Origin: Entomortierella parvispora E1425
Taxonomy: Eukaryota > Fungi > Mortierellomycota
NCBI GenBank assembly: GCA_020891255.1
Contig: BQFW01000014.1
Location: forward strand, 868,001 to 932,000
Length of the DNA stretch: 64,000 bases
Direction: 5' to 3'
In this document: piece by piece, positions 1 through 15,000 of the stretch
How the letters are laid out: each line of letters opens with the position of its first letter
Numbering within the stretch: the first letter of the stretch is position 1
Position numbers and translations under genes: made by a program
The notes under the pieces: generated by a model
Told to the model about the DNA's origin: nothing
Seen by the model: the letters and a program-made list of their open reading frames with translations, nothing else
Database searches by the model: none

Positions 1-797
1 GTTTACGACCCTGAGAACGGCAAAGTACATCTCGGCCCTGGCCCTCAACATTCCTCGTCTATCCTATCGATGGATCGATGCCTGCAGTGAAGCCGTAAGT
101 CATCTTTTGGAAAGGGGAGAAACATGCAAGAATAGGATGATCTTGCTCTTTGACTGAAGTTCTCTGACGCGCTTTGTTTCTGTCTTTCCATATCATTAGC
201 GCCAATTGTTGCCTCACCATTCCTACCATTTGCCAACTGGATTCTCCAATGAGCTTGAGACGATCGTGTCCAGTATTCCTTACATGCCTACAGGACTTTT
301 TGACGGACTCATCATTGGTCTTTGCGGAGGCTTGTCTATCAGGGTAAGTCTGACCACTGTTTATTTTGGAGACTCATTTCCCTCAACAGATTCGAGATGT
401 TTTGTAGATCTTTTCTAAATTCTCACTCTTTTTCCTCTCTTTCGTTTTTCTTGTCATTTTGTAACTCTAGAATGAATGGGAGCGTAATTTGTATGCTGCA
501 GGAGCAAAGAAAGTCAAGGTTGTCAATGCAAAGACAGGACCCATGAATTGCAACTACATTGTCTTTTTCAACACCAAGGCCTATCGAGCGTTTATCGAGT
601 CCAATAATTCTGTGCCTTCGCTCTGTGATGAATGGTTGATCCAGTGTCTAATCAACCAACGTATCGTTTCTATCCATGGTCACAAGAGTTACACGGATCT
701 TGCAAAGAAGGATAATCCTAACCAGCAGCAGCCCCAACAACAGCAATCCCATCATGCTGCCAACACCTCCTCGGCCTCTGGAGGACATTCCAGTTAA
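1..797 (+). CDS. 3' part (5'-truncated by the window) of a Rad9/Crb2/53BP1-like DNA-damage checkpoint protein, tandem BRCT; exons about 2-94, 200-343, 471-797
   Basis: Manual translation gives TLRTAKYISALALNIPRLSYRWIDAC (BRCT1), HLPTGFS, and EWLIQCLINQRIV (BRCT2), resembling the Crb2/53BP1 C-terminus. GTAAGT donors at 95 and 344. Confidence 0.8.
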
Positions 798-959
798 GAT
801 TATCAGCAGTAGAAAAAACCCTCCCGATCATCCCCCATGTCCTTTTTGTTTGTTTGTTTGTTGTAGTTGTAGTTATCATTAAAGTCGTTCTCATCATCCA
901 AGATACCGGACCCCCCTCCCCCCACGCGTTCTGTTCTTGTTCATTAACCTTTTTATTGC

Positions 960-1540
960 GTGCCATCGTCCTGGACAATTGTAATGACATTTGGCCTTGG
1001 ATGGTTCGAGAACTGGAGGTCCTCGCGAAACAGTCCAGGGTTATCAATTAGGTTGGCATGGGGGGGAGGGGGGTATCAGATACTGAGGTCTGCAAGGGTG
1101 CAGGCGTACAAGGTTCAAAGGCAATCGAGAACAGAGTGGATCCTCCTGTCAGTTCTGGCTGGCCTTGTCATTGAGAGTATTCAATTTGGAGTTGCAATTG
1201 CTCAGTCTGTAGTTGCATCTCTTCCTCTTGTCGTCTGCGCTATAGGTGGCTCTCTGCCATGCCTTGATCTGTAAGGAGGAATGGCCCTGGCTGCGACCGT
1301 GGCTGCTGCTGCTGCTGTTGTTGTTGTTGTTGTTGTTGTTGTTGCAGTAAGTTCAGGGCCAAGATCCTTTTTGATGGTTTCGTTGTCGTGTTGTTTTCTA
1401 AATTTCGAAAGAGCTCCAGATCCGTCTCGGACACGTTCATTTTTTCCCCTTGGTCTTCGCTTTGCAGAGGTGGATCGTCTCCCTGAACGGATTTTCCATA
1501 CGATGGCTGCGATCACAGCCAGGGTCGCCAAGAATCCCCG
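960..1540 (-). pseudogene. Degenerate C-terminal remnant of a single-pass membrane protein with a polyQ tail
   Basis: A TM-like segment (FLATLAVIAAIVWKIR) is followed by polyQ, RRQEEEMQLQTEQLQLQIEYSQ and LQFSNHPRPNVITIV, spread over different frames with in-frame stops. No upstream exons; it is cut off where the tandem duplication begins (about 1575). Confidence 0.35.
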
Positions 1541-1799
1541 CCAGGATCCCGTTCTGCAACTCTACCGCAAAGGTCTGTCTGTTATTCACTTTGATCAGAT
1601 TTATTGATAGCTGGTGGACTTGTATGGGTGGGTTGCGCAAAGTCACCATATCACGGTCATGAGATGCTGCGTCCTTATCAAAAGAAGATAAGATTGAACA
1701 AGCCTCGAGTCAAGAGAACTGGAGAGGCATCGAAAGAGTGTGGTAAAGCTGGAACATATGTACAGTACAAGAGCTTTTGGAAGAAGGGGTGTAGACCCA

Positions 1800-2231
1800 T
1801 TAGGGCGACCAGTCAATATAAGTCTTGCCCTTGACTTCAAAATCACCAACGGGGGATGGACCGACGATTTTGGCTCCGCTCTTCTTCCACTCAAGGACGA
1901 TCTCGCCTCTTCCAATGCGTCCGGAGAATTCACCTTCAAAATCTTCGGGGCGGTTCAGCAAAAAGGTCACGTCTTTAAAGAAAAAATCGTCGATGGGAAA
2001 CTTCTCTTCGAGCTGTCCTTTGATGTTCCAAAAAGTGTTGCCGTGGATTCGTGCCTGGATACGATTTTCATCAAAGAAGATCCAGCCGGGAATTTTTTCT
2101 TGGAGGTTGTACTGAGCGGGGCGGCCGAACAAGCCTCTCTCGTAGGTTTTCTCCTCGCAGAATGTCTCCTGACGGGCAAGAGAAGCGGCAGGGAGAATGG
2201 CAGCCAAAAGACAGACAAGGAAGGGACGCAT
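1800..2231 (-). CDS. Small secreted protein, copy 1 (143 aa, signal peptide, beta-rich), function unknown
   Basis: ATG at 2231 gives MRPFLVCLLAAILPAASLA (signal-peptide-like). The ORF is conserved in the paralog at 4389-4820 (about 81% aa identity by manual count). TATA box about 95 nt upstream. Confidence 0.85.
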   Translation of the reverse strand: MRPFLVCLLAAILPAASLARQETFCEEKTYERGLFGRPAQYNLQEKIPGWIFFDENRIQARIHGNTFWNIKGQLEEKFPIDDFFFKDVTFLLNRPEDFEGEFSGRIGRGEIVLEWKKSGAKIVGPSPVGDFEVKGKTYIDWSP

Positions 2232-2318
2232 CGTGGAGTTGGTTGGAAAAGGTTGAGGGTGATAGAGGGGGAAAGAAGTTGGTGAATAAAAAAGTAGGAT
2301 GTAGTCGAATGGGTCTAT

Positions 2319-2328
2319 CCTTTTATAC
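2319..2328 (-). promoter_or_regulatory. TATA box (GTATAAAAGG) upstream of secreted gene copy 1; equivalent at about 4907-4916 for copy 2
   Basis: The motif sits at the same distance from the ATG in both paralogs. Confidence 0.6.
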
Positions 2329-3987
2329 TTGAGGGAAACCAAGAAGTTACCACCCCCGAACGCGAAAACGTGTGCCATCATTGGAGAAAATCACCTCATG
2401 GTCGCATGGAAAAGGGGCTGTCTTGCTACCGTCGCGTAGAAATGGTTGTCTCCCGAGGCACCAGTCGATGCCCCGCAAGGAAGCGACGCGAGAAATCAAA
2501 CCACAATTCGCAATCCTCCCACTTCCCGTTGAGCAATGGCATGCAGGGCGATGAGGTAAGAAATCAAAATTGCACCTTTTCATTTTCCCACGTCCTTTCA
2601 GGAGGCATTCTTGACCAGTGTTCTGCAAGACGCTGAGGCAAGAAAGCAGGCTGGGGTTGTTTTTTTCTCACATCCTTCTCTGCGCCTGGCCAAAGCCATG
2701 CAAGATGAACCAAACCACATTCGTGCATTGTCCTCATTTTCCAGTTTGTGTCGTCACCCCACAGCTCATACCCCTGCCCATCTACGCACACATTTCCCAG
2801 AGGCTCCTCTGTCGCCGCCCATTGGCCTAGGAACAGGATCTATTCTTCGCGTTTCGATCTCCCGCATTTGCTCTTGCTCGCCTTTTTTTTTTTTTTTTTT
2901 TTTTTTTTTGCATATTATGCCTTGCACTGCACCCGAATTTTAGGGATGTGAATGGTACTCTGAGCGCCTGCCATTTTGTGCCCATGCACCTATGCAAAAG
3001 TTCTTGCTCCCAAGAGTTTTGATTTTTAGGTGAATGCACAGTGCAAGAGCGGAGAAAGATGGATTCTTCCTCAATGGAAAACTCCCACGAAGAACCTATT
3101 CAACTCAATTATAGGCTCATGTGACATGGTATCCATGTGAAGATCAAGAGTGCGCGAGTAAGTCGTTGTTGGTGTCACAGATAGATACGTAGAAGATGAG
3201 TAAAGAATAGGAGAAGGAAGACAAAGGAAAAAGCAGTCTTTGATGTTGGATGTGAGTTGCAAGTTAAAATAAGTAGGGCACGACCATACGGCTTTCGTTG
3301 TTCATAGGCGGGCAAATCCTGCATTGGCAATGCGTGGGAACAAATAAGTCTGATCGGGATGGATAGAAGGCAGTAGTTACTGCGAAATCAGGGGCCCCTG
3401 GACCTCTGAGTGAATGTCAGACGTGTTTTGACAATCAGCGGGGCGACAACGGGAGAAAGGATGATCGGGGACATCGAGGCGCAATGATAATCCGTCTGTA
3501 TAGAAATAGTGGGGTTAGTAGGGAACTGGGGCGTTGAGGGTTTGGTCGGGATATGAGGTGCTGATGCAGTGGGCTCGAGCGCAGGAGTAGGACGCGAAAG
3601 AAGATAATGATCTGGTGCGTGACAATATGCAGAAAGATCTCGCGCAAGAATGAACGCGCTCTCGAGATACTTTTTTTGTTCACTAAGAGCAGCAGTTGGG
3701 GTTTATCGACGGTCTCCATCATGTCTAGCTTGCAGTGCGCCTGATTCTCGTCGCTCTTGTTTACACCAAGTAGCTCTTGGAGACTTGTCATGTCAGAGGT
3801 GAGTGGTAGATCTAGAGATCGGGCTTGGATCCTTATTAAATCCACTACATCGCATTGCATGCGGCAATGAACGTGCTCGGAAAGAGTATGACTCATCCCA
3901 CAAGAGTCGCGGTTTGCAATTGATTGAACTTGTCGTTTGCAGTTGGATTCTTACCCCCCCCCCTTCTTCGCAACTTCTCTTCCCCCA

Positions 3988-3989
<2 letters not shown>

Positions 3990-4030
<41 letters not shown>
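3990..4030. repeat. (CT)n microsatellite
   Basis: Direct reading. Confidence 0.95.
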
Positions 4031-4034
<4 letters not shown>

Positions 4035-4388
4035 CTTGTATTATTTTTTCCGGCACATATAGACCGCCGGCGTTTCTGAGCGCTTTCTCAATGACGACAC
4101 CCTCAAAAATTTGCCTTGACTTCAACCTGACAAAAATAGGGTAGAACTCTCCTTTTGAAGACCACAGAGGGTCGAACACACATAGGTCTGTTATTCACTT
4201 TGGTTGAATTTATTGATAGATGCGAACTTATATACGTGGATTGTGTAAGGTTGCCATATCAGGATCATGGTGCTGCCTCCATATCAAAGAAAATTGAGAC
4301 AGGAGAGAAAATTGAAGAGGCCTCGAAGAAATTGTGGGAAAGCTGGAACATATGTACAAAAGCTTCTGGAAGAAGGGGTGTAGACCCT

Positions 4389-4820
4389 TTAGGGCGACCA
4401 GTCAATATAAGTCCTGCCCTTGACCTCAAAATCACCTTGGCCAGCTCGACCGATGATGGAGGCTCCGCTCTTCTTCCACTCAAGGACGATCTCGCCTCTT
4501 CCGATGCGGCCAGTGAATTCGCCATCAAAATCAGTAGGGTGGTTCAGAGAGTAGATGACAGGATCAAAGAACAATTCATCGACGGGAAGCTTCTCTTCGA
4601 GCTTTCCTTTGATGTTCCAATAAGTGTTGCCATGGATTCGTCCCTGGATACGATTTTCTTCAAAGTGGATCCAGCCAGGGATTTTTTCTTGGAGGTTGTG
4701 CTGAGCGGGCCGGCCGAACAAGCCTCTCTCGTAGGTTCTCTCCTCACAGAAAGTCTCTTGACGGGCAAGAGAAGCGGCAGGGAGAATGGCAGCGAGAAGA
4801 CAGACAAGGAAGGGACGCAT
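4389..4820 (-). CDS. Small secreted protein, copy 2 (143 aa)
   Basis: Intact ORF with ATG start and signal peptide; paralog of 1800-2231. Confidence 0.85.
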   Translation of the reverse strand: MRPFLVCLLAAILPAASLARQETFCEERTYERGLFGRPAQHNLQEKIPGWIHFEENRIQGRIHGNTYWNIKGKLEEKLPVDELFFDPVIYSLNHPTDFDGEFTGRIGRGEIVLEWKKSGASIIGRAGQGDFEVKGRTYIDWSP

Positions 4821-6419
4821 CGTGGAGTTTGTTGGAAAAGGGTTGGGCTTGGTGGAGAGGAAAAAAGGTGGTGAATAAAAAGTAGGATGTGGTCGAATGG
4901 GTCCATCCTTTTATACTAGAGGGAAAACAAGAAATTACTCCCGAACGCGAAAACGTGTGTTATCATTGGAGAAAATCACCTCATGGTCGCATGGAAAAGG
5001 GGCTGTCTTGCTACCGTCGCGTAGAAACGGTTGTCTCCCGAGGCACCAGTCGATGCCCCGCAAGGAAGCGACGCGAGAAATCAAACCACAATTCGCAATC
5101 CTCCCACTTCCCGTTGCGCAATAGCAATGGCATGCAGGACGATGAGGTAAGAAATCAAACTGCACTTTTTCATTTTCCCCACGTCCTTTCAAGAAGCACT
5201 CTCGACCAATGTCATGCAAGACGATGAGGCAAGAAAGCAAGCCGGGGGTTGTCGTTTTCTCACGTCTTTTTTTGCGCCTGGCCAAAGCCATGCTAGACGA
5301 ATCAAACCACATTTGTGCATTGTCCTCATTTTCCGCTTTGTGTCGTCACCCACAGCTCTTACCCCTGTCCATCAACGCGAACGTTTCCTTTTATTTCGAC
5401 ATCAAGGCCTGGAGGCTCCCCCGTCGTATCCCATTGGTCTGGGGACAGGATCTGTTCTTCGCGCTTCGATCTCGCGCATTTGCCTTGATCGCTTCCTTTC
5501 TCATGTGCATATTGTGCCCTTGCTAAAAGGTACCATGCACGCCATCATTTTGTGCCCGTGCACGTATGCGAAAAAGATTCTTGCTCCTAACAGCTTTGAT
5601 TTCTGGGTGAAATCCACCGTGTAAGAGTGGGAAGATGGTCTCTTCTTCGCTGGAAACACTTGCTCATCTCATTATATCCCCATATGATATGATGTCCACA
5701 TGAAGATCAATACTCTGAGAGAAGTCTTGATAGGTGTCGGGGATAGACACGTAGAAGGTGAGCAATGAACTGGATGAAGACAAAGGAAGTAGCGATCTTT
5801 GATATATGATGTGAGCTACAGGTTGGAATATGGAGGGTTCTACCAAGGGGCTTCTGTTAACAGTCGGGTAAAATCCTCTACGGGAACAAATGAGTCTGAT
5901 CGGGAAGGATAGGAGGCAGTGGTTACTGCAATCAAGGGTTCCCAGGTCTTGAAGGGAGAGTGAGAAGTGTTTTGACAATGAGCGGAACGACAATGGATGC
6001 TAAAGATCATCGGGAACATCGGGATGCAAAGATAATCCGTCTGTGTAGCAATAGCGGGCTAGGCAAAGAACTGGGGCATTGCGCGGTTGGTCGGGCTGAA
6101 CTTGCGCGAAAGAGGATACTGATCTCGGTTTGTGACAACACCCGCTATCCAAACTGTGCTGGTTGTAGGAGAAGAAATATCTGGGTCTGTGCAGAGGCAC
6201 AGGAAGCCAACGCCAGCGAAAAGAAAAACTTTTATCGCAAAGAGCCAGCCTCATTGTAGAATGACGAGAAAATGTCCTGCATGGATGAAAGTAAAGGGAA
6301 AAAAGAGAAAAGAGACAAAGGACATGCGTTGCGAGTTGAGGTCGAGTAAAGGTCACTTGAGCTAAGGTCCCACCTAGCCCTTCTTGGAGACAATGTTGGT
6401 GGGCCATGAAGGGGTGTAC

Positions 6420-6660
6420 TTTGGAAATTTCAAGGCACCATGGGAACCCCTGTCATTGTGATCGAGCTATTACAGCTAAACTTCCCGAAATGCATAAAGA
6501 CGTGAGAATAAATTAGTTGAAAATATAAAGCTTTGTGCTTTTGTCCTCGGATTTTCGTTGCACCTACCGATGCTGTAAAGAAGGTTGTGCTCATTCCACA
6601 TGAGCCTCACTCGCGCGAGTGAACTTTGGCGAGCGCTTTGTCGAAAGGCGCTGGCCATGT
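6420..6660 (-). ncRNA. Candidate Fanzor omegaRNA scaffold overlapping the ORF 3' end
   Basis: Position matches where TnpB/Fanzor omegaRNAs are encoded. Perfect 16-nt palindrome at 6607-6622, AGCGC-CTTT/AAA-GCGCT hairpin at about 6632-6652, AGCT/AGCT hairpin at about 6465-6477. No expression evidence. Confidence 0.35.
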
Positions 6661-9600
6661 CTGTGTTTGTAGTTGAGTACCCAGACATCTGGCGAGATTT
6701 TCGCCGGCGTTATGGTCTCTGTCGATGTCCCAACTGCAGTTTTCACAGAGGATGGATCTGCCTTGCTGAACTGCCCGGAAGCAACATCGGCTGCAGAACT
6801 GACTGGATCGAAACTCCGGGAGATTCACCGCTGGGATGCCATTGGCATTCGCCTATAATGTATAAGAGAACTAGATGTTAGATATAACACCCCTTACTCT
6901 CTTTGAAAATCGACTCCGGCAACACTTACTGTTCGCGCTAGTTCGTCCAAGGTTTTTTCCTTTCGGCCGCCAAAGTCCCCGTCACCTATTCCAAGAACGG
7001 CTGGCGTCTCTCGGTACTCTTGAACTTCAGTCGGTGGAATATTCGGGTGGGGAATATGCGCCATCTTGATGGCCGCTGCACAGACCAGGCTTCTGTCGCT
7101 TCGGATCGCCGTCTTCATATCATAGAGATCCTTCTTGAAACTGATTGATCCGTAAAAGGTCCTTAGCTTCTCAAATGTAGCGAGGCGAGGTCTGAGCCAG
7201 TCCAAGTGGTTACTATAGAGTGCGCTGGCAGCTGCCCTCCAATCGCAGACTGTTGTCCCATTTTCCTGTGTGACCTTCACTTGTACGGGAGCAACATCTG
7301 CAATCAATGTGTTCTCCAGTTTGTCGATCCCATGGGTCTTTTTCTTTGCGTTTAGACATCCCATGTATCGCTTTTGAATGTCTTTAGCCACGGTGTCGGT
7401 GATATCGAGGGTCTGTGAAAAGTCAGGGTACTTGGTGTGTACTGCGACCACGCTTGCAGGTTTCGCCGAGCCTGGATCTACCCCGATCCCGATAAAATGA
7501 GGGCCACCCAAAGACTGAACACGCTGCGCTGTTGAGAAGAGGTCCTGGACATACGGCAGGGTTTTCGCATGTACTGCTGCAGCCTTTACGCCTGTGAGGT
7601 TTGGCTGTACCACCTGTCCCTGCCCTGGATTTCCATATCCAACACTAGGACCCTCATTAGGATTTTCAGTCTCACTTCCAGGCGGGCTCTCCTCCAGCAC
7701 AGGATCAGGAGACGTCCAAAGCTCTGAGTCGTATATATCCAAGGATGAAGGTAAAGCGGAAGATGCAGCAAAAGGTAGAGCGGAAGGCAGAGCAAGAAAA
7801 CTTTCCTCTGGAGCTACGGCAGGGATATTGTGCTGATAACCACTGCTGGTAGGACTGGGGTTGCTCTTCGTATTCTTCTTTGGGCGTAATGTGGTCAAAT
7901 CAAAAGCCAACACATGGAGGTTATGACCGTCCGTCTTGATGACACCCGTCGGAACATAGTGTCTTCGAGGTGTGTTCTCGGCGCTACTGCTCGACCGCGC
8001 ATGCAGACCATGTAGAGTCACGTCTCGCAGTTGTCGTTGTTGTGTAGCTGACATGTTGCTTAAAATGTCCTTCAGCCGTTGTAATTCAACCTCCATCGAC
8101 TTTAGGGCGTTCGAGATTGATCCACTAGCCGTATGGATGTTCGCGATGGTGGGGGGAGGGTTACCAGGAAGCTGTGACCATTGCCCCTGAAACACCGAGA
8201 TGCGTTGGAGTAAGTCTTGAGAATCTGCCAGCCCAGGGTCCTGTTTTTTAGCCAAGCTGGAACATTCCCTCAGGAGAGCGCAGAGCGTTTTGTCGATTGA
8301 TGTGTATTCATCCAGGTGCTCCAGCTCTGTTTGAATCCTCAGGCGCGAATCAGGAAAGAACAAAGCGCGCTCACTGTTCATGGCTGGGTTCATGAGAGCA
8401 GTGCCACGTCTGTACGAAGTATTTTTCGACATGAAAAAGTTGAAAAATAGCTCCCCTCTGTGGGCGATTGCTCGTTGTTCAGCGGCCGCGACCGTTCCAC
8501 TGAAGATTGCACCTAGTGCACTCTTTGTAGTTTGTGTAGGTTTGATGTGTCGGCATGCATCAACGAACTCCCTTTCGGTGAGGTCCAGATCCCGGTCTTT
8601 GAAGGCGACTACAGGGAATAGCGCAACTTGACTGTCGGGTCGCAGTAGAGTGTTCAGGAGCAAGTGAACGGATATGGGATCGTGCAGCTTTGACCGACCA
8701 GTGCCTTCAATCGAATCCAGGAAAAGTCGTCCTTGCTCGGACTTTGAGAATTGTATCTGCTGGACAAGAACCTAGCGAACAGGACAGAGACAAGAGTGAG
8801 CGACGAGCAAAGACATAAAGACCATAAAACATCGCACTATGAATGTCAAGCACTTACTCGCTGCTTAAGTTCGCCGACGTTTCTCAGAACAAGGCTGCAG
8901 ATTAAGTCGTGTGCGCTGCGTGCGCAAGATTCCAAGAATTTGGCGCTGACTGCCTTCTCTGGTCTCTTCGTAAAGGGGTCGAATGGAATCCCGCTGGCCT
9001 GCTGGTTGCTATGCTTCTTTTTGAACTCCAGCACCACCGCAAACGCAAGCCGCTGTGTGCCTTCGCACTTGAGCTGAGCGAGGGTAGCGTCTGTAAGATC
9101 GTTCCATTTCCAAAGGGCTCGCACCACATGATATACGAAGATTTGACTTGTGTAGACTGGACCAAGTGCATCTTTTCTTTTCTTGACGTCGTCCTCGTCA
9201 AGAGTGGGGTAAGACTTGAAAATAGACAACGCATAGTCTTGCAATACCGCGATCGCCGACCAAATTGCGTCAGAGTTTGCTTTGACCAGGTCCATCATTA
9301 TTGTCCGCGTGGATCGGTACGTATTCTGTACTTCCAATGATGTCGATCCCTTCATTTGGCTTTCAAGCCCTTTGTAAAGTGTAGAGCACAGACTACCCGG
9401 CTGGAGTGCCACCTGGGAAAATGTTGTTTCCAGAGTAGCTTTAATGTGCGTGGTGTCGTGCTCCCTCCTTGTCGCAACGACTGAGCCAGCCGAAGACGCC
9501 AAGTCGCCCATCTGTTTGTTCACAGCATGTCGCGCCTTTCTGCTTGAACGGTTGTAAATGGGCTTGGAGGTAGCCGCCTTTTTTTCGTTCGTCTTTTTCT

Positions 9601-11517
9601 TCTTCTTTTGGCTTGCCTCCTGCGAAAGGGGACGCTTCTGACTGGTTGCGGCAGTAGGAATCGAGGATGAACCTGCTGGGTTGTCACCTTCCAAGTTCTG
9701 GTTGACTAGATCCGTCGCAAGTGGTGGGGATCCAGTTTGGTTGTCAGAGTTGCTGGTGTGGGTAGCGTTCGGAGTGACGGGGTGGACTTTTGGAGGGCCT
9801 ATGGACTGATCGTATAGCCCCACGGGTCTCTCATTCCTAGACCAGCCAGGGCGAAGACCCTCCAACCAAGCTGTGCGGTCATGATGGCGAATCTTTGAAA
9901 GGTAGTCTGGCCGCTTTCTATCCCTCATGAATCGCAGAAAGCTATTCATAAAGTGCAGTACTGTTTAGAAAGGGATATTCGGCAAGTTAGGCTTTCTCTC
10001 TGCATAGCAATATGATACCATACCCTTGCTGAGTCTCTGTCCGACTTGGGCTTCCTCCTTCCAGGACCACAGGCAATGATGAGGCGCTTGACCTGATGAA
10101 GGACGGATTGATGACATTCGTTCAGAAAAGAAAAGAAAAGAAAAGAAAAAAAAAAAGAGTGACAATTTGAGATATCTTACCTTGCGGTTGGTTTGGTCCG
10201 CTTGTTCCTGTTTGAGAGATCGCATAGGGGAGACAACAGGTCAGTACTGCTGGTCCTTGAGTGCCTTTCAATAGGACAAACGCTTGACACTTACCTATAT
10301 CGAAGCTTGGAGACTTCATTCACGATATGTAGCATCAAGTGGTCGACGAGCTTTGCCGCATTATCCTCCAAGATGATGCCGGCGTCTGTATCCTCCTTAT
10401 TGTCGATGAAGATATCCACGCTGTTCTCAAAGACAGCCTGATCAATGGAATTCTGAGAGCAGAACTTCTTGATGTAGTCGAATGCCTTTGGCATGTCTGG
10501 AATTTCGTCCATGTCGCGGATGGTCTCCACAATCTTTGTAAGGCTTAGGCCGGGGACCTTTCGATCGTAATCATTCTCTGCCAGAACTGCCACTGCTTGC
10601 CATTGTTCATAGGACAGTTCAAGGCTCCCGAGGATCGCCCCGACATCATATTTGTAATACCGGCCGCCTTGAGGACTCTTGCGCAATACATATGTTGCTC
10701 CGTGAAAAATATTATCGCTGTCAGCCGAAGCGACCACTGTGTCTTCCTGCTCTTCTTCAGCATGCCTACTGATGCAAACATCAGCCTCCCCTGTGCAGAC
10801 GTGCACCTTCCATCCCTTCGAGCCGAGTTGATTGCCAAGTGTGTCCCAGTCCTTACGAGTCATTGCCTTTGTATTTATCCACGCCTTGAGCAGTGGGCCG
10901 CGAATCCTCTTCACTAACCGAAGTAGTTGGTTCTTTGTTGGCTTGGCCTTTCCGGCTGCAGTTTTCAGGGACACTTGCGATTGCAAATGGGCGAGATGGA
11001 ACAAAACGGATGATGCCTTGTGGACAAACGCTGCAATCGCTCCGATTCGAGAACGATCTCTTTTCTGGCGGGCGTATGTCTTTTGGATGGTTCTGGCGCC
11101 GTCAAAGTGGAGTATTCCTTGGTCTTTAGAAAACTTTTTCGACAGTGTTTTGTCGATCGCCGCCGAGATGTCGATCTCAAATATTGCCGAGGGGACTGGT
11201 GGGAGCGTAGACTCGGAGCCGATCAGTGATAAAAACTCCGTGTTGCTCTTGATGGCATCAGTCTCAAGAGGAGGGACTTTGGTCAAAAAAAGAGAGATCT
11301 CAGCGGGAAGGAAGTAGGGCGCCTCGAGGTTGGCCGAGGAGTTCATGTGATTTTTCATTTCCAAAAAGATCTTGTTGCAGCGGATGCTTCTCGCAAGCGC
11401 AAACAAGATAGCAGGAATATCGATGTGGACTCTCGGGAAAACATCTTTGGGCACAACTTCGGGATACTCCAGGCCTTCGATGTTGGCCAAATACGGCCAG
11501 GTGCTGGTCACGCCCAT
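6607..11517 (-). CDS. Predicted 1,496-aa PIN(XPG/FEN1-like)-Fanzor/TnpB RuvC fusion; exons 11517-10295, 10207-10181, 10092-10024, 9941-8858, 8771-6930, 6852-6607
   Basis: Five GT-AG introns of 87, 88, 82, 86 and 77 nt keep the frame (4,491 nt in total). PIN motifs: MGV, HID, FDG, KxxxxxxR, GEAD, DSD, H3TH NDY. Fanzor motifs: TDG, GVDPG (RuvC-I), PEFRSSQFCSRC (RuvC-II and CxxC), CENC, DRDHNA (RuvC-III). The intron-3 acceptor (9942) is the least certain junction. Confidence 0.85.
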
Positions 11518-12061
11518 CTATGACACCAAAGACGATTAAACAGCTTCAGTTAGATGGATATGTACTACGCTGACTACAGTTCACTCTCCTGATGGAGTTA
11601 AGAGCCCAACTCAAAGAGGACAACGGCAGTTTGCGCTCTTTCCCCGTGCATATGCCAAAAGCCTTGTCTCGAAAAGATACACTGTTTTTGTACTTAGAGC
11701 GTGATCCTTACGTCAGTGACGGCAAGCTCTGAGTGTCCAAGGGCGGTGATAGATGATGAGTGCAGAAAAGTGGTAGTTTGTAATACTCAGTGAATAAAGC
11801 AGGGATGATGAGAAAGGAAAGGTGCGGGGATGGTGAGAAAGGCAAGGAGCAAGAAAGGACGAGTGGATGATCGATAGCTGATGGTTCTGGCCATCAGATT
11901 TCCAAAAAAAACTAGGATAATTTTTACTATTGATGCCCCTCGCAGTTGCATCCTACAAGCACAATAAACACTAATATGTTATACATAATGAACTCCATAA
12001 AGAGAAGTTCGTCTGTATCAATTTCTCTTTTTCTGCATCCTGCCCATTTTCCTTCTCCACT

Positions 12062-15000
12062 TTATCGCCGTTCGTTGACACGGAATTGAAGCCAGAGGAA
12101 AGCGACAAAGAAAAAGGTGCCGGCCATGATTCCCAAGTTTTGAACATCCTTCCAGTAGGCTCCCGAGTTGAATCCAAAGGTTGACAGGATGATGGCACCA
12201 GGGACATCGATTTCGAGTCCGTATTCCTTTTGGATCAGTTGCAAAAACGTAATCTCGTTCACCAACAGAGCCTCAAATGCAAAGTTGAAGAAGGACAGCT
12301 TTTGGAGCCAAGACAAGTTCTCTGGAATTGATTCTGTGAAAAAAAAAAAGTTAGAAAATACTCTGAAATCCAAACAGTGGCCATTGGTCTATCGTGCATA
12401 CAGAAAACAAACTCACCTTTGTTCAAGAGAAGACCGCCAAACAGCATGGAGAAGAGCATGACCAAACTGCTCATCAGATTGGCCACACCAACCTCTTCAA
12501 AAATGATGCCAATCATTAGGCAAACACCCGATGCTGTAAAGTTGAACAGGACCAGAACCAAGAAGAACTTTCCAAACTCGTTCCATCCCTCGACCAATCC
12601 GACCATGTTGTAAATGATCAGACCCATTAGCATCGGGGGAATCACTCGCAAAGGAACGATATCGAACAAGACCTTGGAGGAGAAGTAGGTCAGAGGCGAA
12701 TAATAGCCGTTGGCGCGCTCGCGGACAAATAGAATACGCTCATGAGCAAAAGACGGCAAGATGGACAGGCACGAGAATCCAAAGAGGGCACACATGAAGA
12801 AGAAGACACCCATACGATTCTGGAATCCAGGAATGTCGTTCGTGACCTTGTAAAAGAGTGCACCGCAAAGCAAGCCCAAAAAGATGGACATGCAAAAGTG
12901 AGAGAGCATCAACATGGGGTCGCGGTAAATGTTCTTTAGCGTCCTGTCGGCCAGAATCCTGAACTGGCTCCACCAAGAGGCTCTTCTGTAAGTGGAAACG
13001 GTCTTGCCATTGCTGAGTCCACTGTGAATCGATCCGGGGGGAGCTCCCTCCTCACCCGCACGACCGCCCTGGACGGCGAATTCGATCTGCTGCTCGACAT
13101 CCAACAGGAGATGGCTGTGTTTGAATCCATCGACGAGTGACTGAAGATGGGCGTTGGCAATACTGGGATCATCTGAGCCAGGTGCGTGTGTGTCACTATC
13201 GCTGGCTCCGGAAGAAACGGGATCAATGCCAATCGTGGTGTCTCCTGCTGGGTTGTTTCTAGATGTGGATGCCGCAAGTCCGTTGGTCCTAGGGCGATCA
13301 TGTTCGCGGGAAGCCAGCTCGCTCTCCCACTGAAGGGTGTCATCGATAATGCTGGGGGCACGAGTAAAAGATGGGCTGCCATTCGTAGAGATTCCTGCAG
13401 CTGGTCGGCTTTGATCAGTTCCAAAGAGCCGTTCTTCCTGCTCCTCCTGGACCGCATGAGAAGGCTCCAGCGTAATTTCCTCGTCACCGTTGGCGCGATT
13501 AGAGTGCTTAGAGCCCTTTCCATTGTACATGGTCAAATCAAGCATGTAGTCTGCCATGTTGTACCCTTCTGGGCAAGGGTGGCCAAGGCTCCTCAGGTGT
13601 CCGTTCAAATGCCTGGTCTCTCCAGAATACACGAGGTCTCCCTTGGCCATAAGGACAAGCTGATCAAAGAGCGCAAAGATGTTACTCCGGGGCTGGTGAA
13701 TTGTGCAGACGACGGTGCGGTTGTAGTTTCTAGCAAGCGTGACAAGACACTCGACCACGTTGTAGGCGTTGTATGAATCCAGTCCTGAAGTAGGTTCGTC
13801 CAAGAACAAGATTGAAGGGGACGTGACAAGTTCACAAGCAATAGACACTCTTCGCTTTTCGCCTCCAGAGATGGATCGCTGACCGCTGGCTCCAATCCTC
13901 ATGTCCTTGATAGCCAAGATTCCCAGCTCCGACATTGTCTCCATAACACGGAATCGCTTGGCATCAAAAGACATGTCGCGAGGCAAGCGAAGAAGAGCTG
14001 AGTAAAGAATGGTCTCGTACACTGTCAATGTGGGCATTAATGTATCTTCTTGATCCACATATCTACACAATTTAAAAAGACATGTGAGTGTTAATAGGTC
14101 CGCCCCTTTTTCTTTTCAATGATGCTGTTGCGCCAATATGGCCGCACTGTCCTGCTTACCCAACCACACGCTTGTACTCATGGTGAGAGATTGTCTTGCC
14201 ATTGACATAGATATGGCCATGAACAGTTCCAGACTTGTTACGCCTGGCAAGAATATCCAACAAACTGGTCTTTCCGGCACCACTGGCGCCCATAATGGCC
14301 ATGACCTGACCAGGCTTGACAAGACCGCTGACCTGCTTGAGCACTTCCTTGCCTCCGACTGTGTATCCCATGTTTTTGAACATCAATGTCGCAGGAATGT
14401 GTTCCGCCATCAGCTTGGCAGCCTCATCATCGGGCAGAGCAATAAAGCCATCTCCAGAAGAGTTGGATTTCTTGGCCAAATACCAGACTCCAAGGCCGAG
14501 GCCGATGAGGAACAAGAAAACACCAATGATTGAGAGGATGATTGCCAAGGTGTAGTCTGGTCGGGGTGGTCGCTTAAATCCTGGAACCTGAGTATAGTGC
14601 ACACACTCTCCGCTGTGACAGTTCAAGTAGATCGCTGGATCACCGAACATTGTCATGATCAATTCGTTCATGGCAGGCTCTGTTTGGTAGAAAAGTATCA
14701 AAGTCTGTCAGTCATTCCTTCCTCCAGCTTTTCATGTTCCTATTCTGATTGCAATAACCACAGTTTTACCTTCAAAGACACACTTCTTGTCATCTCCACA
14801 AACAAACTCAGCAGGTCCACGAATCTCCTCGTCCAAAAAGTCGTCAATGTCTGAATCAAATTTCAGTGACGACTATTAGTCTTGGGATATTGCATCCACG
14901 ACATGAATCACGCACGACATGACAATAATGACTTACTGACGCTTCCATCCTTGCCGCAAAGCATTCTATCAGGAATGCACGAGCATTTGATGTTTTTGCA

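Follow-up and report, generated by a model that had tools for sequence, protein, structure and literature searches.

A mobile element in the genome of the fungus Entomortierella parvispora E1425 carries a gene in which a predicted FEN1/EXO1-family 5' nuclease precedes a predicted Fanzor1-type RuvC nuclease. The gene was studied in a 64,000-nucleotide stretch of contig BQFW01000014.1 (positions 868,001 to 932,000; hereafter the window, with positions counted from its first letter), where it is the cargo of a multi-copy element of ~5.5 kb that runs on the minus strand from ~12001 to 6471. The gene parts described below all lie on that strand. The reading we consider probable is that the gene is one of a small family in fungi whose Fanzor1-type nuclease acquired an N-terminal FEN1/EXO1-family nuclease, that it travels on an element without its own transposase, and that the two activities would act together in the manner proposed below. 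Comparison of homologs indicates that the dual-nuclease fusion is a real and old family, with one polypeptide as its ancestral and common state. At the window locus itself an in-frame fusion is plausible and evolutionarily supported, yet contradicted by the sole transcript seen.

A first-pass annotation of the sequence had joined four large open reading frames (ORFs; 11517-10291, 9949-8846, 8663-6894 and 6828-6607) with a 27-nt and a 69-nt micro-exon, in frame, through five GT-AG introns of 77-88 nt. This model was reproduced exactly. Its six exons (11517-10295, 10207-10181, 10092-10024, 9941-8858, 8771-6930 and 6852-6607) and five introns (87, 88, 82, 86 and 77 nt) give a coding sequence (CDS) of 4,491 nt and a protein of 1,496 aa, and all motifs named in that annotation were found in the translation. 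Joinability in an open frame is by itself weak evidence for such a model, because enumeration gave 1,152 GT..AG paths that connect the first ORF to the second in frame; the comparative data support it better. When the first ORF was the query of a word-indexed search, two relatives only came up (68% and 62% identity). Metagenome contigs of the 62%-identity relative (L001) carried ORFs of 418, 350 and 646 aa in the same order, and alignment to the window showed six exons alike, donors and acceptors kept at every junction, and an open frame of 1,508 aa. Micro-exon 2 was 27 nt long in three species (RNKRTKPTA in the window, RHKRTKPLS in L001 and RRKRTRTVS in L006), with synonymous changes among them. 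Micro-exon 3 measured 69 nt in the window and 87 nt in L001, open and a multiple of 3 in both, with a shared peptide S-A-S-(S)-L-P-V and the flanking CAG/ and /GTATGG kept (slashes mark the cut). Micro-exon identity between the two was 48%, like that of other variable parts of the protein. Nucleotide identity of exons versus introns between the window and L001 was uninformative, and protein-level and synonymous-site evidence was used because the same aligner scored unrelated flanks at 0.51.

The fusion itself was found in relatives. A phmmer search of the whole library with exon 5 returned 33 relatives only, and in seven matches of 1,104-1,211 aa the start of exon 5 aligned at residue ~740-775. 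These seven long homologs begin MGVEGV... or MGIGD..., like XPG-family proteins, and their N-termini matched the window PIN ORF (P0021, E=1e-29; P0013, E=2e-13). One of them, P0013 from Mortierella sp. GBA39 (KAF9146337.1), combined the PIN match with the Pfam TNB domain. At the P0010 locus (L011), a single unbroken ORF (1899-5405) covered everything from the beginning of the PIN domain past GIDPG and up to GDGDFG...KKK; it was followed by one intron, at the position of window intron 5, and then by an exon with the zinc ribbon and RuvC-III (DEWRTS..CCQC..DRDHNGAHN). Further members occurred in Mortierella sp. GBAus27b, Benniella and Modicella. In the AlphaFold DB entry A0A507C583 (855 aa), residues 5-286 matched our PIN model and residues 410-841 our Fanzor model. 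Both domains were thus found together in one protein in Mortierella, Benniella, Modicella, metagenomes and the AlphaFold DB. The family is small, with a few dozen sequences from indexed and exhaustive searches, and the suspicion of the first-pass annotation that it might already be catalogued as hypothetical was justified: members sit in databases (KAF9146337.1, A0A507C583 and others) under the labels 'hypothetical protein', '5'-3' exonuclease' and 'Cas12f1-like TNB domain-containing protein'. The position of intron 5, just after GDGxFG...KKK/ART, was also common to the window, L001, L011 (L011:~5330-5420) and other Mortierellomycota-type homologs, and by this comparison intron 5 is likely an old intron within a transposon gene.

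The N-terminal 407 aa, encoded by exon 1 (10295-11517), are predicted by sequence and fold model to be a FEN1/EXO1/XPG-family 5' nuclease with a complete set of catalytic residues. Profile, fold and residues all bore out the earlier assignment of an XPG/FEN1-type PIN nuclease to aa 1 to ~400. Its sequence marks it as a divergent member of the FEN1/XPG superfamily: Pfam XPG_I matched exon 1 below threshold (E=6e-4, 20.6 bits against a cutoff of 24.9), XPG_N was not reported for the window protein, and neither curated XPG_N/XPG_I threshold was reached. A family profile searched against PDB sequences matched FEN1, EXO1, XPG, GEN1 and Rad2 at E=1e-5 to 1e-3. In alignments with distant homologs, D33, D139, E244, D246, D266, D268 and D316 were invariant or nearly so, and from the alignment with the PDB profile we take these seven acidic residues to be D34, D86, E158, E160, D179, D181 and D233 of human FEN1. 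Two further invariant residues, K146 and R153, lie 7 residues apart at the start of a long helix (144-182) and presumably correspond to the FEN1 gateway pair K93/R100. An AlphaFold (AF2) model of the window's own 407 residues reached a pLDDT of 88.3 and a pTM of 0.85. Foldseek aligned this model to human FEN1 (3q8k, E=1e-9), with the PIN-like alpha/beta core and the H2TH matched; there were 83 PDB matches at E<=1e-3, and FEN1, EXO1, XPG and Rad2 structures filled the top 50.

The C-terminal ~725 aa (~aa 770-1496) are, on sequence and modelling grounds, a predicted Fanzor1-type module. Exon 5 (6930-8771) encodes WED/REC and the first part of RuvC, as assigned from the phmmer family matches, alignments and a homolog model. 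The phase 0 intron 5 (6853-6929, 77 nt) splits the RuvC domain, and exon 6 (6607-6852, stop codon 6609-6607) carries the remainder. Exon 6 matched Pfam PF07282 (Cas12f1-like_TNB) above the gathering score (E=1.1e-7, 32.4 bits against a cutoff of 26.3). RuvC-I was recognised by D1233 in GVDPG (7478-7476), with D-P-G nearly invariant in the family alignment, and RuvC-III by D1461 in DRDHNAGEN, which aligned to DRDENAAKNI of ApmFz2 and to TnpB/Cas12f. A zinc ribbon (C1435xxC / C1451xxC) stands ahead of RuvC-III. At the canonical RuvC-II position, IGDGDFG (from 6989), glycine replaces glutamate, and E1428 (LPEFRSS), 32 residues downstream, aligned with E467 of ApmFz2. In Fanzors the canonical site is Gly or Pro, and ApmFz2 E467 is the relocated RuvC-II residue, essential in vitro (10.1101/2023.06.13.544871).

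A C-terminal profile from four homologs with complete C-termini (A3) matched the mimivirus Fanzor2 ApmFz2 (9b0l, E=3e-8) among PDB sequences, and further matched ISDra2 TnpB (E=1e-5), Cas12f and the Parasitella Fanzor1. A profile of the whole module (A2), from which the C-terminal columns had been dropped, gave no TnpB or Fanzor match among PDB sequences. Because intron 5 splits the window RuvC, the module was folded from a 31%-identical Mortierella homolog in its place (P0013:600-1160; 34-row alignment, AF2 pLDDT 77.6). The top five Foldseek matches of this model were SpuFz and GtFz structures (E=4e-9 to 3e-7), SpuFz1 aligning over ~530 columns at E=4e-9, and the Parasitella Fanzor1 (PpFz1) followed, then CasPhi, Cas12f and TnpB. 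The earlier TnpB/Fanzor RuvC assignment was upheld by profile, by the fold of this homolog and by catalytic residues. The ~650-aa helical and basic middle region described with it has to be shortened, as Fanzor WED/REC starts near aa 770 and only ~360 aa of linker and helical domain remain. This part contains a basic linker (KKKKKTNEKK, aa 552) and a conserved YNRSSRKAR motif followed by the helical domain, was kept in all long homologs, and had no Pfam or Atlas match. Exon 4 (8858-9941) encodes the disordered basic linker and helical domain, and its last ~30 aa start the Fanzor module. From residues and fold, we predict RNA-guided cleavage of double-stranded DNA that would depend on a target-adjacent motif (TAM) for the C-terminal module, and 5'-flap/exonuclease activity for the N-terminal one.

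Sequencing runs were used to ask how the gene is transcribed. A search of RNA runs gave none with the gene; an unrestricted search gave two runs from one sample (X1 and X2), both labelled 'DNA?' as a guess, and their contigs were compared over window positions 6200-12100. X2 behaved as genomic DNA, with a depth of ~400 and no intron-skipping joints. X1 behaved as cDNA: it had adapter tails and a depth that varied between 3 and 150, and its seven joints were all GT-AG on the strand of the gene. Three of these joints matched predicted introns exactly: intron 1 (10208-10294; GTAAGT...ACAG with a branch-like TACTGAC; joint 10206->10294, cut +1), whose splice sites were conserved in L001 and L006; intron 4 (8772-8857; joint 8769->8856, cut +2, CT..AC ends), whose position was kept in L001; and intron 5 (joint 6851->6929, cut +1). 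Upstream of the start codon, a 194-nt intron in the 5' untranslated region (UTR; 11518-11711; joint 11517->11712, CT..AC ends) had the donor AC/GTAAGGAT and an acceptor TAG/ abutting the ATG; donor and TAG/ATG were conserved in L001 and L006. With the 3'-UTR intron described below, the whole unit was transcribed in X1 as one spliced RNA. Consistent with this, a 1,532-nt X1 contig (record 3) carried exons 1, 2, 4 and 5 on one RNA, so that the PIN and Fanzor parts are not confined to separate mRNAs. It covered exon 4 with zero differences from the window. Separately, an X1 contig of depth 150 ran from the last exon and 3' UTR of an ABC-transporter gene (12062-14070, minus strand) through 11712 and was spliced to the exon with the PIN ATG; this continuity is either read-through of the ABC gene into the element or assembler merging of overlapping transcripts. 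The intron between the two micro-exons is T-rich and holds a CTTTT microsatellite (10116-10162), where reads appear cut in the run data.

The same record 3 departed from the predicted model at one place, which decides the frame. Micro-exon 2 (10181-10207), which encodes the basic peptide NKRTKPTA, resembling a nuclear localization signal (NLS), was joined from its end at 10181 straight to 9960, in a contig of depth 6.9. The intron observed is thus 220 nt long (9961-10180; donor GTAAGA, branch CTAAC, acceptor AAACAG/; joint 9960->10181, CT..AC ends). Record 3 leaves no room for the 69-nt micro-exon 3, X1 had no joints at its borders, and this cassette exon (10024-10092) is a prediction supported by comparison. 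Of the five introns in the earlier model, then, X1 contained 1, 4 and 5, and lacked the junctions around exon 3 and at the predicted in-frame acceptor GAATAG/C (between 9942 and 9941), the use of which was not seen in X1 contigs. The observed acceptor (between 9961 and 9960) lies 19 nt upstream of it and is the expected choice, since no other AG intervenes between it and the CTAAC branch site. Read from the ATG, the X1 isoform ends ...RNKRTKPTASTALYE at TAG 9945-9943 and encodes a 423-aa PIN protein that terminates with the basic peptide of micro-exon 2. For the Fanzor part, a separate ORF of 1,059 aa could begin at ATG 9949, overlapping the PIN stop; both codons lie in the segment between the two acceptors (9941-9960). 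With acceptor 9942 the frame is restored either way, to 1,496 aa with the cassette exon and 1,473 aa without it, and keeping exon 3 while beginning exon 4 at 9960 is out of frame. The fused isoform, unobserved at the locus, may still exist because contigs drop minor isoforms. L001 offers a view of what selection has kept: it has TCG where the window has ATG 9949, and upstream of its first Met it retains N-S-F-L-R-F through three synonymous changes, together with the acceptor GAATAG/C. This conservation of codons and acceptor favours the fused frame. The claim of a single dual-nuclease polypeptide accordingly stands for distant homologs, where both modules occur in one protein, and is not matched by the window transcript, which gives a PIN-only protein and a separate Fanzor ORF.

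That the gene is carried by a mobile element was solid. Homology between the window and L001 was confined to 11538-6471. On the right, past a sharp boundary at ...AGCTGTA/ (6471-6475, last base 6471), the window, L001, L002, L009 and L010 each continued into unrelated DNA, and contigs from the same organism left the window sequence at 6471 (two from X2, one from X1) and at 6467; eight differing right flanks were counted. X2 depth over the element was ~400-860, compared with 79 and 215 in the flanks (~5x), and X2 contigs were 95-97% identical to the window, which shows that the organism has several close paralogs. A domesticated single-copy host gene was ruled out by the eight flanks and the excess depth. 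On the left, X2 depth stayed at 590-860 up to ~11912, one paralog contig diverged at 12001, and an X1 contig was continuous from 12100 to 11712 before splicing. The left end was tentatively placed near 12001, ~61 nt after the ABC-transporter stop (12062), giving a 5' untranslated exon of 11712-12001. No further copies were found in the 64-kb window, and no terminal inverted repeats or terminal hairpins at the element ends. In line with the spread without a transposase that the first-pass annotation had considered, no transposase ORF was seen in the unit, beside the window copy, or in a 1.7-kb block upstream of the gene in L001. Several 95-97% identical copies and a transcript in the same organism suggest that the system is probably active.

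Other copies showed their own variations. One X2 contig (depth ~70) lacked 1,499 bp (9985-11483), had TGGTA instead, and so represents a PIN-deleted paralog; X2 contained the corresponding joint 9984->11484. The 1.7-kb upstream block (L001:4907-6593 and L002:179-1866) was 99.7% identical between the two contigs, non-coding, and bordered by different DNA to its left. It contained low-complexity ORFs only and had no counterpart in the window, so the element's left portion is not the same in every lineage. Outside the L002-shared block, 4.5 kb upstream of the PIN-Fanzor gene, L001 carried a 392-aa ORF with an NDC10_II domain (L001:921-2099, minus strand). NDC10_II has a tyrosine-recombinase-like fold, as in Crypton elements, and this ORF could be a trans-acting recombinase or unrelated. 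In the left flank of L002 (L002:140-178) a degenerate stretch resembling the right end, CATTTAGACACTTTCTA, was followed by the 12 nt CTGGTGATCATT, the same 12 nt that follow the right end in L001 (L001:11706-11717). Insertion of one copy within or next to another, or a favoured target site, could account for this.

The 3' end of the element was conserved beyond its coding content. Over positions ~6700-6471 nucleotides were near-identical between the window and the L001 family, compared with ~65% identity in the CDS, and their proteins were only ~64% identical. Among conserved four-fold residues the same codon was used in 71% of cases in the last 41 codons versus 33-47% elsewhere, in a small sample. 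The region (6471-6700), which overlaps the last codons and the stop, folds into three hairpins (z ~ -2.1 to -2.6), and Rfam had no family for it. It also contains a 3'-UTR intron of 92 nt (6476-6567; GTAGGT...TTTAG/; joint 6475->6568, CT..AC ends) with its acceptor 5 nt short of the right end, and the X1 transcript extended into the flank for 270 nt or more, reaching 6200. Donor and acceptor of this intron were conserved in L001 (where it is 96 nt long), L002, L009 and L010. A 6-bp hairpin of TTACAG (6576-6581) and CTGTAA (6470-6475) can form only after splicing, and TACAG/CTGTA is kept in L001 (here the slash separates the two arms). Judged by its conservation and folding, the structured 3' end looks like a candidate omegaRNA locus with an unexpected intron.

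We propose that these parts could work together as follows. The two acceptors 19 nt apart would decide the product, 9961 yielding the 423-aa PIN protein and 9942 the 1,473- or 1,496-aa fusion. The fused isoform would be the route to Fanzor translation, because the 1,059-aa ORF behind a 423-codon ORF would otherwise need reinitiation, and splice choice would meter a dangerous nuclease. The 3' hairpins and the adjoining flank would form the omegaRNA scaffold and guide. The Fanzor ribonucleoprotein would then cut empty sites that match the flank-derived guide, leaving 5' overhangs of the Cas12/TnpB type, and the tethered or co-expressed FEN/EXO1-like domain would remove the 5' flap or displaced strand or resect 5'->3'. 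The resulting 3' tails would direct repair toward homologous recombination with the copy that carries the element, as homing or retention. Known enzymes provide the precedents: TnpB cuts the empty donor site and recombination then restores the transposon, Cas12-type cuts leave 5' overhangs, and FEN/EXO1-type enzymes remove 5' flaps and resect 5' ends. It is by analogy with these that we infer a homing function in which RNA-guided cutting is coupled to the removal of flaps or to resection. Because homing leaves the many differing flanks unexplained, a transposase acting in trans or some other route of insertion would still be needed.

Several points weigh against this reading. The sole isoform assembled in X1 is out of frame, which leaves the fused protein a prediction at the window locus; the library type of X1 is itself a tool guess. 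The fold evidence for the Fanzor module comes from the 31%-identical homolog and not from the window protein. The left end is imprecise, no TAM could be derived, and no motif is common to the left flanks of L001 and L002. The candidate omegaRNA has no Rfam family, and its diverged copies are too few for covariation. Finally, new flanks demand a transposition mechanism beyond homing.

The alternative that survives best, possible though not our preference, is that the two nucleases are made only separately, from an effectively dicistronic transcript or an internal start, as the 423-aa FEN-like protein with its basic tail and the 1,059-aa Fanzor from ATG 9949. They would cooperate in trans, an ancestral fusion having been split by a shifted acceptor. 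The joint of exon 2 to 9960 in record 3 speaks for this, as do the position of 9961 as first AG past the branch point, the presence in the window of ATG 9949 overlapping the PIN stop, and the PIN-deleted paralog in the same organism, which implies that a Fanzor-only copy can persist. L001, however, lacks the ATG and yet has kept the upstream codons synonymously along with the in-frame acceptor. X1 depth was similar across the exons of the PIN and Fanzor parts and gave no hint of a more abundant internal transcript, and minor isoforms would be hidden by the contigs. Reinitiation after a long ORF, here 423 codons, is also inefficient in eukaryotes.

A bolder version of the proposed mechanism, which we regard as rather doubtful, would make the element a self-contained homing or 'gene-drive' cassette, in which an RNA-guided cutter and its own resection or flap nuclease, joined in one protein or through one splice-regulated transcript, would let the element copy into empty sites by recombination without a transposase, the guide RNA would be matured by removing the intron whose end is 5 nt from that of the element, and acceptor choice would act as a switch between a harmless PIN-only product and the dual nuclease. 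It is improbable that the substrate of the FEN-like domain is instead RNA or the ends of the element itself, with the domain maturing the omegaRNA from the mRNA 3' end or cutting structured single-stranded ends as a transposase substitute. No transposase was found, the candidate omegaRNA is embedded in the mRNA and would need processing, and FEN-superfamily enzymes are structure-specific, some of them cutting RNA flaps; but in its active site and K146/R153 gateway the domain matches enzymes with 5'-flap or 5'-exonuclease activity on DNA, TnpB-type enzymes process the 5' end of their own omegaRNA, and terminal hairpins or inverted repeats were absent from the element ends. That X1 is genomic DNA whose intron-less joints derive from a processed retrocopy, so that nothing would be learned on transcription or splicing, fits its 'DNA?' label and the absence of a library record but is very improbable, given the depth of 3 to 150 across 6 kb with adapter tails, the seven joints that are all GT-AG on the gene's strand with UTR introns included, the one joint continuous with the neighbouring ABC gene's exon, and the sister run X2, which at ~400x from the same sample shows none of these joints.

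Under the preferred reading, that of a Fanzor1-type nuclease which gained a 5' nuclease, the closest known systems are the Fanzor1 proteins SpuFz1, GtFz1 and PpFz1. The ~560-aa module of the homolog aligned to SpuFz1 as given above; shared traits are a CCCC zinc ribbon that interrupts RuvC, a canonical RuvC-II site occupied by glycine, a glutamate relocated to a position ahead of the ribbon, a basic NLS-like stretch, spliceosomal introns, a multi-copy element, and a conserved structured non-coding 3' end that abuts the right end of the element. In contrast to them, the window protein has a ~770-aa N-terminal extension with a complete FEN1-family nuclease, and its family is too diverged for PDB Fanzor1 sequence matches outside the TNB/RuvC-III part. 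The window element also differs in that no transposase was seen, in that its candidate omegaRNA has a conserved spliceosomal intron, and in that its guided activity is predicted. With FEN1, EXO1, XPG and GEN1 the PIN part shares a full-length fold match (human FEN1, EXO1, XPG and Rad2), the MGV N-terminus, the seven acidic residues and a K...R pair at the K93/R100 spacing of FEN1. It differs from them by ~50-70 additional residues inserted between the first and second acidic positions, a longer helical arch (helices 144-182 and 195-215), the lack of a PCNA-box-type tail, and its carriage by a mobile element, where it is fused to, or transcribed together with, a predicted RNA-guided nuclease.

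The likeness to TnpB of IS200/IS605 and IS607 (ISDra2) comprises the TNB/RuvC-III profile match (E=1e-5), the expectation of a guide-RNA gene that starts near the nuclease ORF's 3' end and extends to the right end, and the proposed cutting of empty sites with recombination restoring the element. The window protein, unlike TnpB, is eukaryotic, intron-bearing and ~3.5x larger, with no TnpA partner and an added 5' nuclease. Engineered fusions of Cas9 or Cas12 with exonucleases (T5 exo, EXO1 and similar) are used to bias repair; they are alike in concept only, in that a 5'->3' nuclease is attached to an RNA-guided cutting enzyme, and are artificial, whereas the window gene is natural, transposon-borne and unrelated in sequence. 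In the searchable literature, a natural fusion of Fanzor/TnpB with XPG/FEN was not described, nor was Fanzor in Mucoromycota; searches for Fanzor with 'PIN domain' gave incidental co-mention only, and TnpB with XPG co-mention without such a fusion. Fanzor surveys and a 2024 structure paper reported only HTH and COG0675 as extra domains, or none. This agrees with the initial impression that no system of PIN-Fanzor architecture has been characterised. The Fanzor literature covered also had no mention of an intron inside a putative omegaRNA, an acceptor flush with a start codon, or a frame-switching acceptor pair.

Fanzor and TnpB are compact ancestors of Cas12 and are under development as genome editors. 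A natural coupling of Fanzor with a FEN1/EXO1-type nuclease would offer an existing blueprint for editors with a bias toward templated repair or defined deletions. The coupling was found in Mortierellomycota, in the window genome, in soil relatives and in one AlphaFold DB entry. On the role of Fanzors in eukaryotes and the way Fanzor elements spread, the PIN-Fanzor coupling of these fungi points to an answer that can be tested, namely that processing of the cut ends may steer repair toward recombination.

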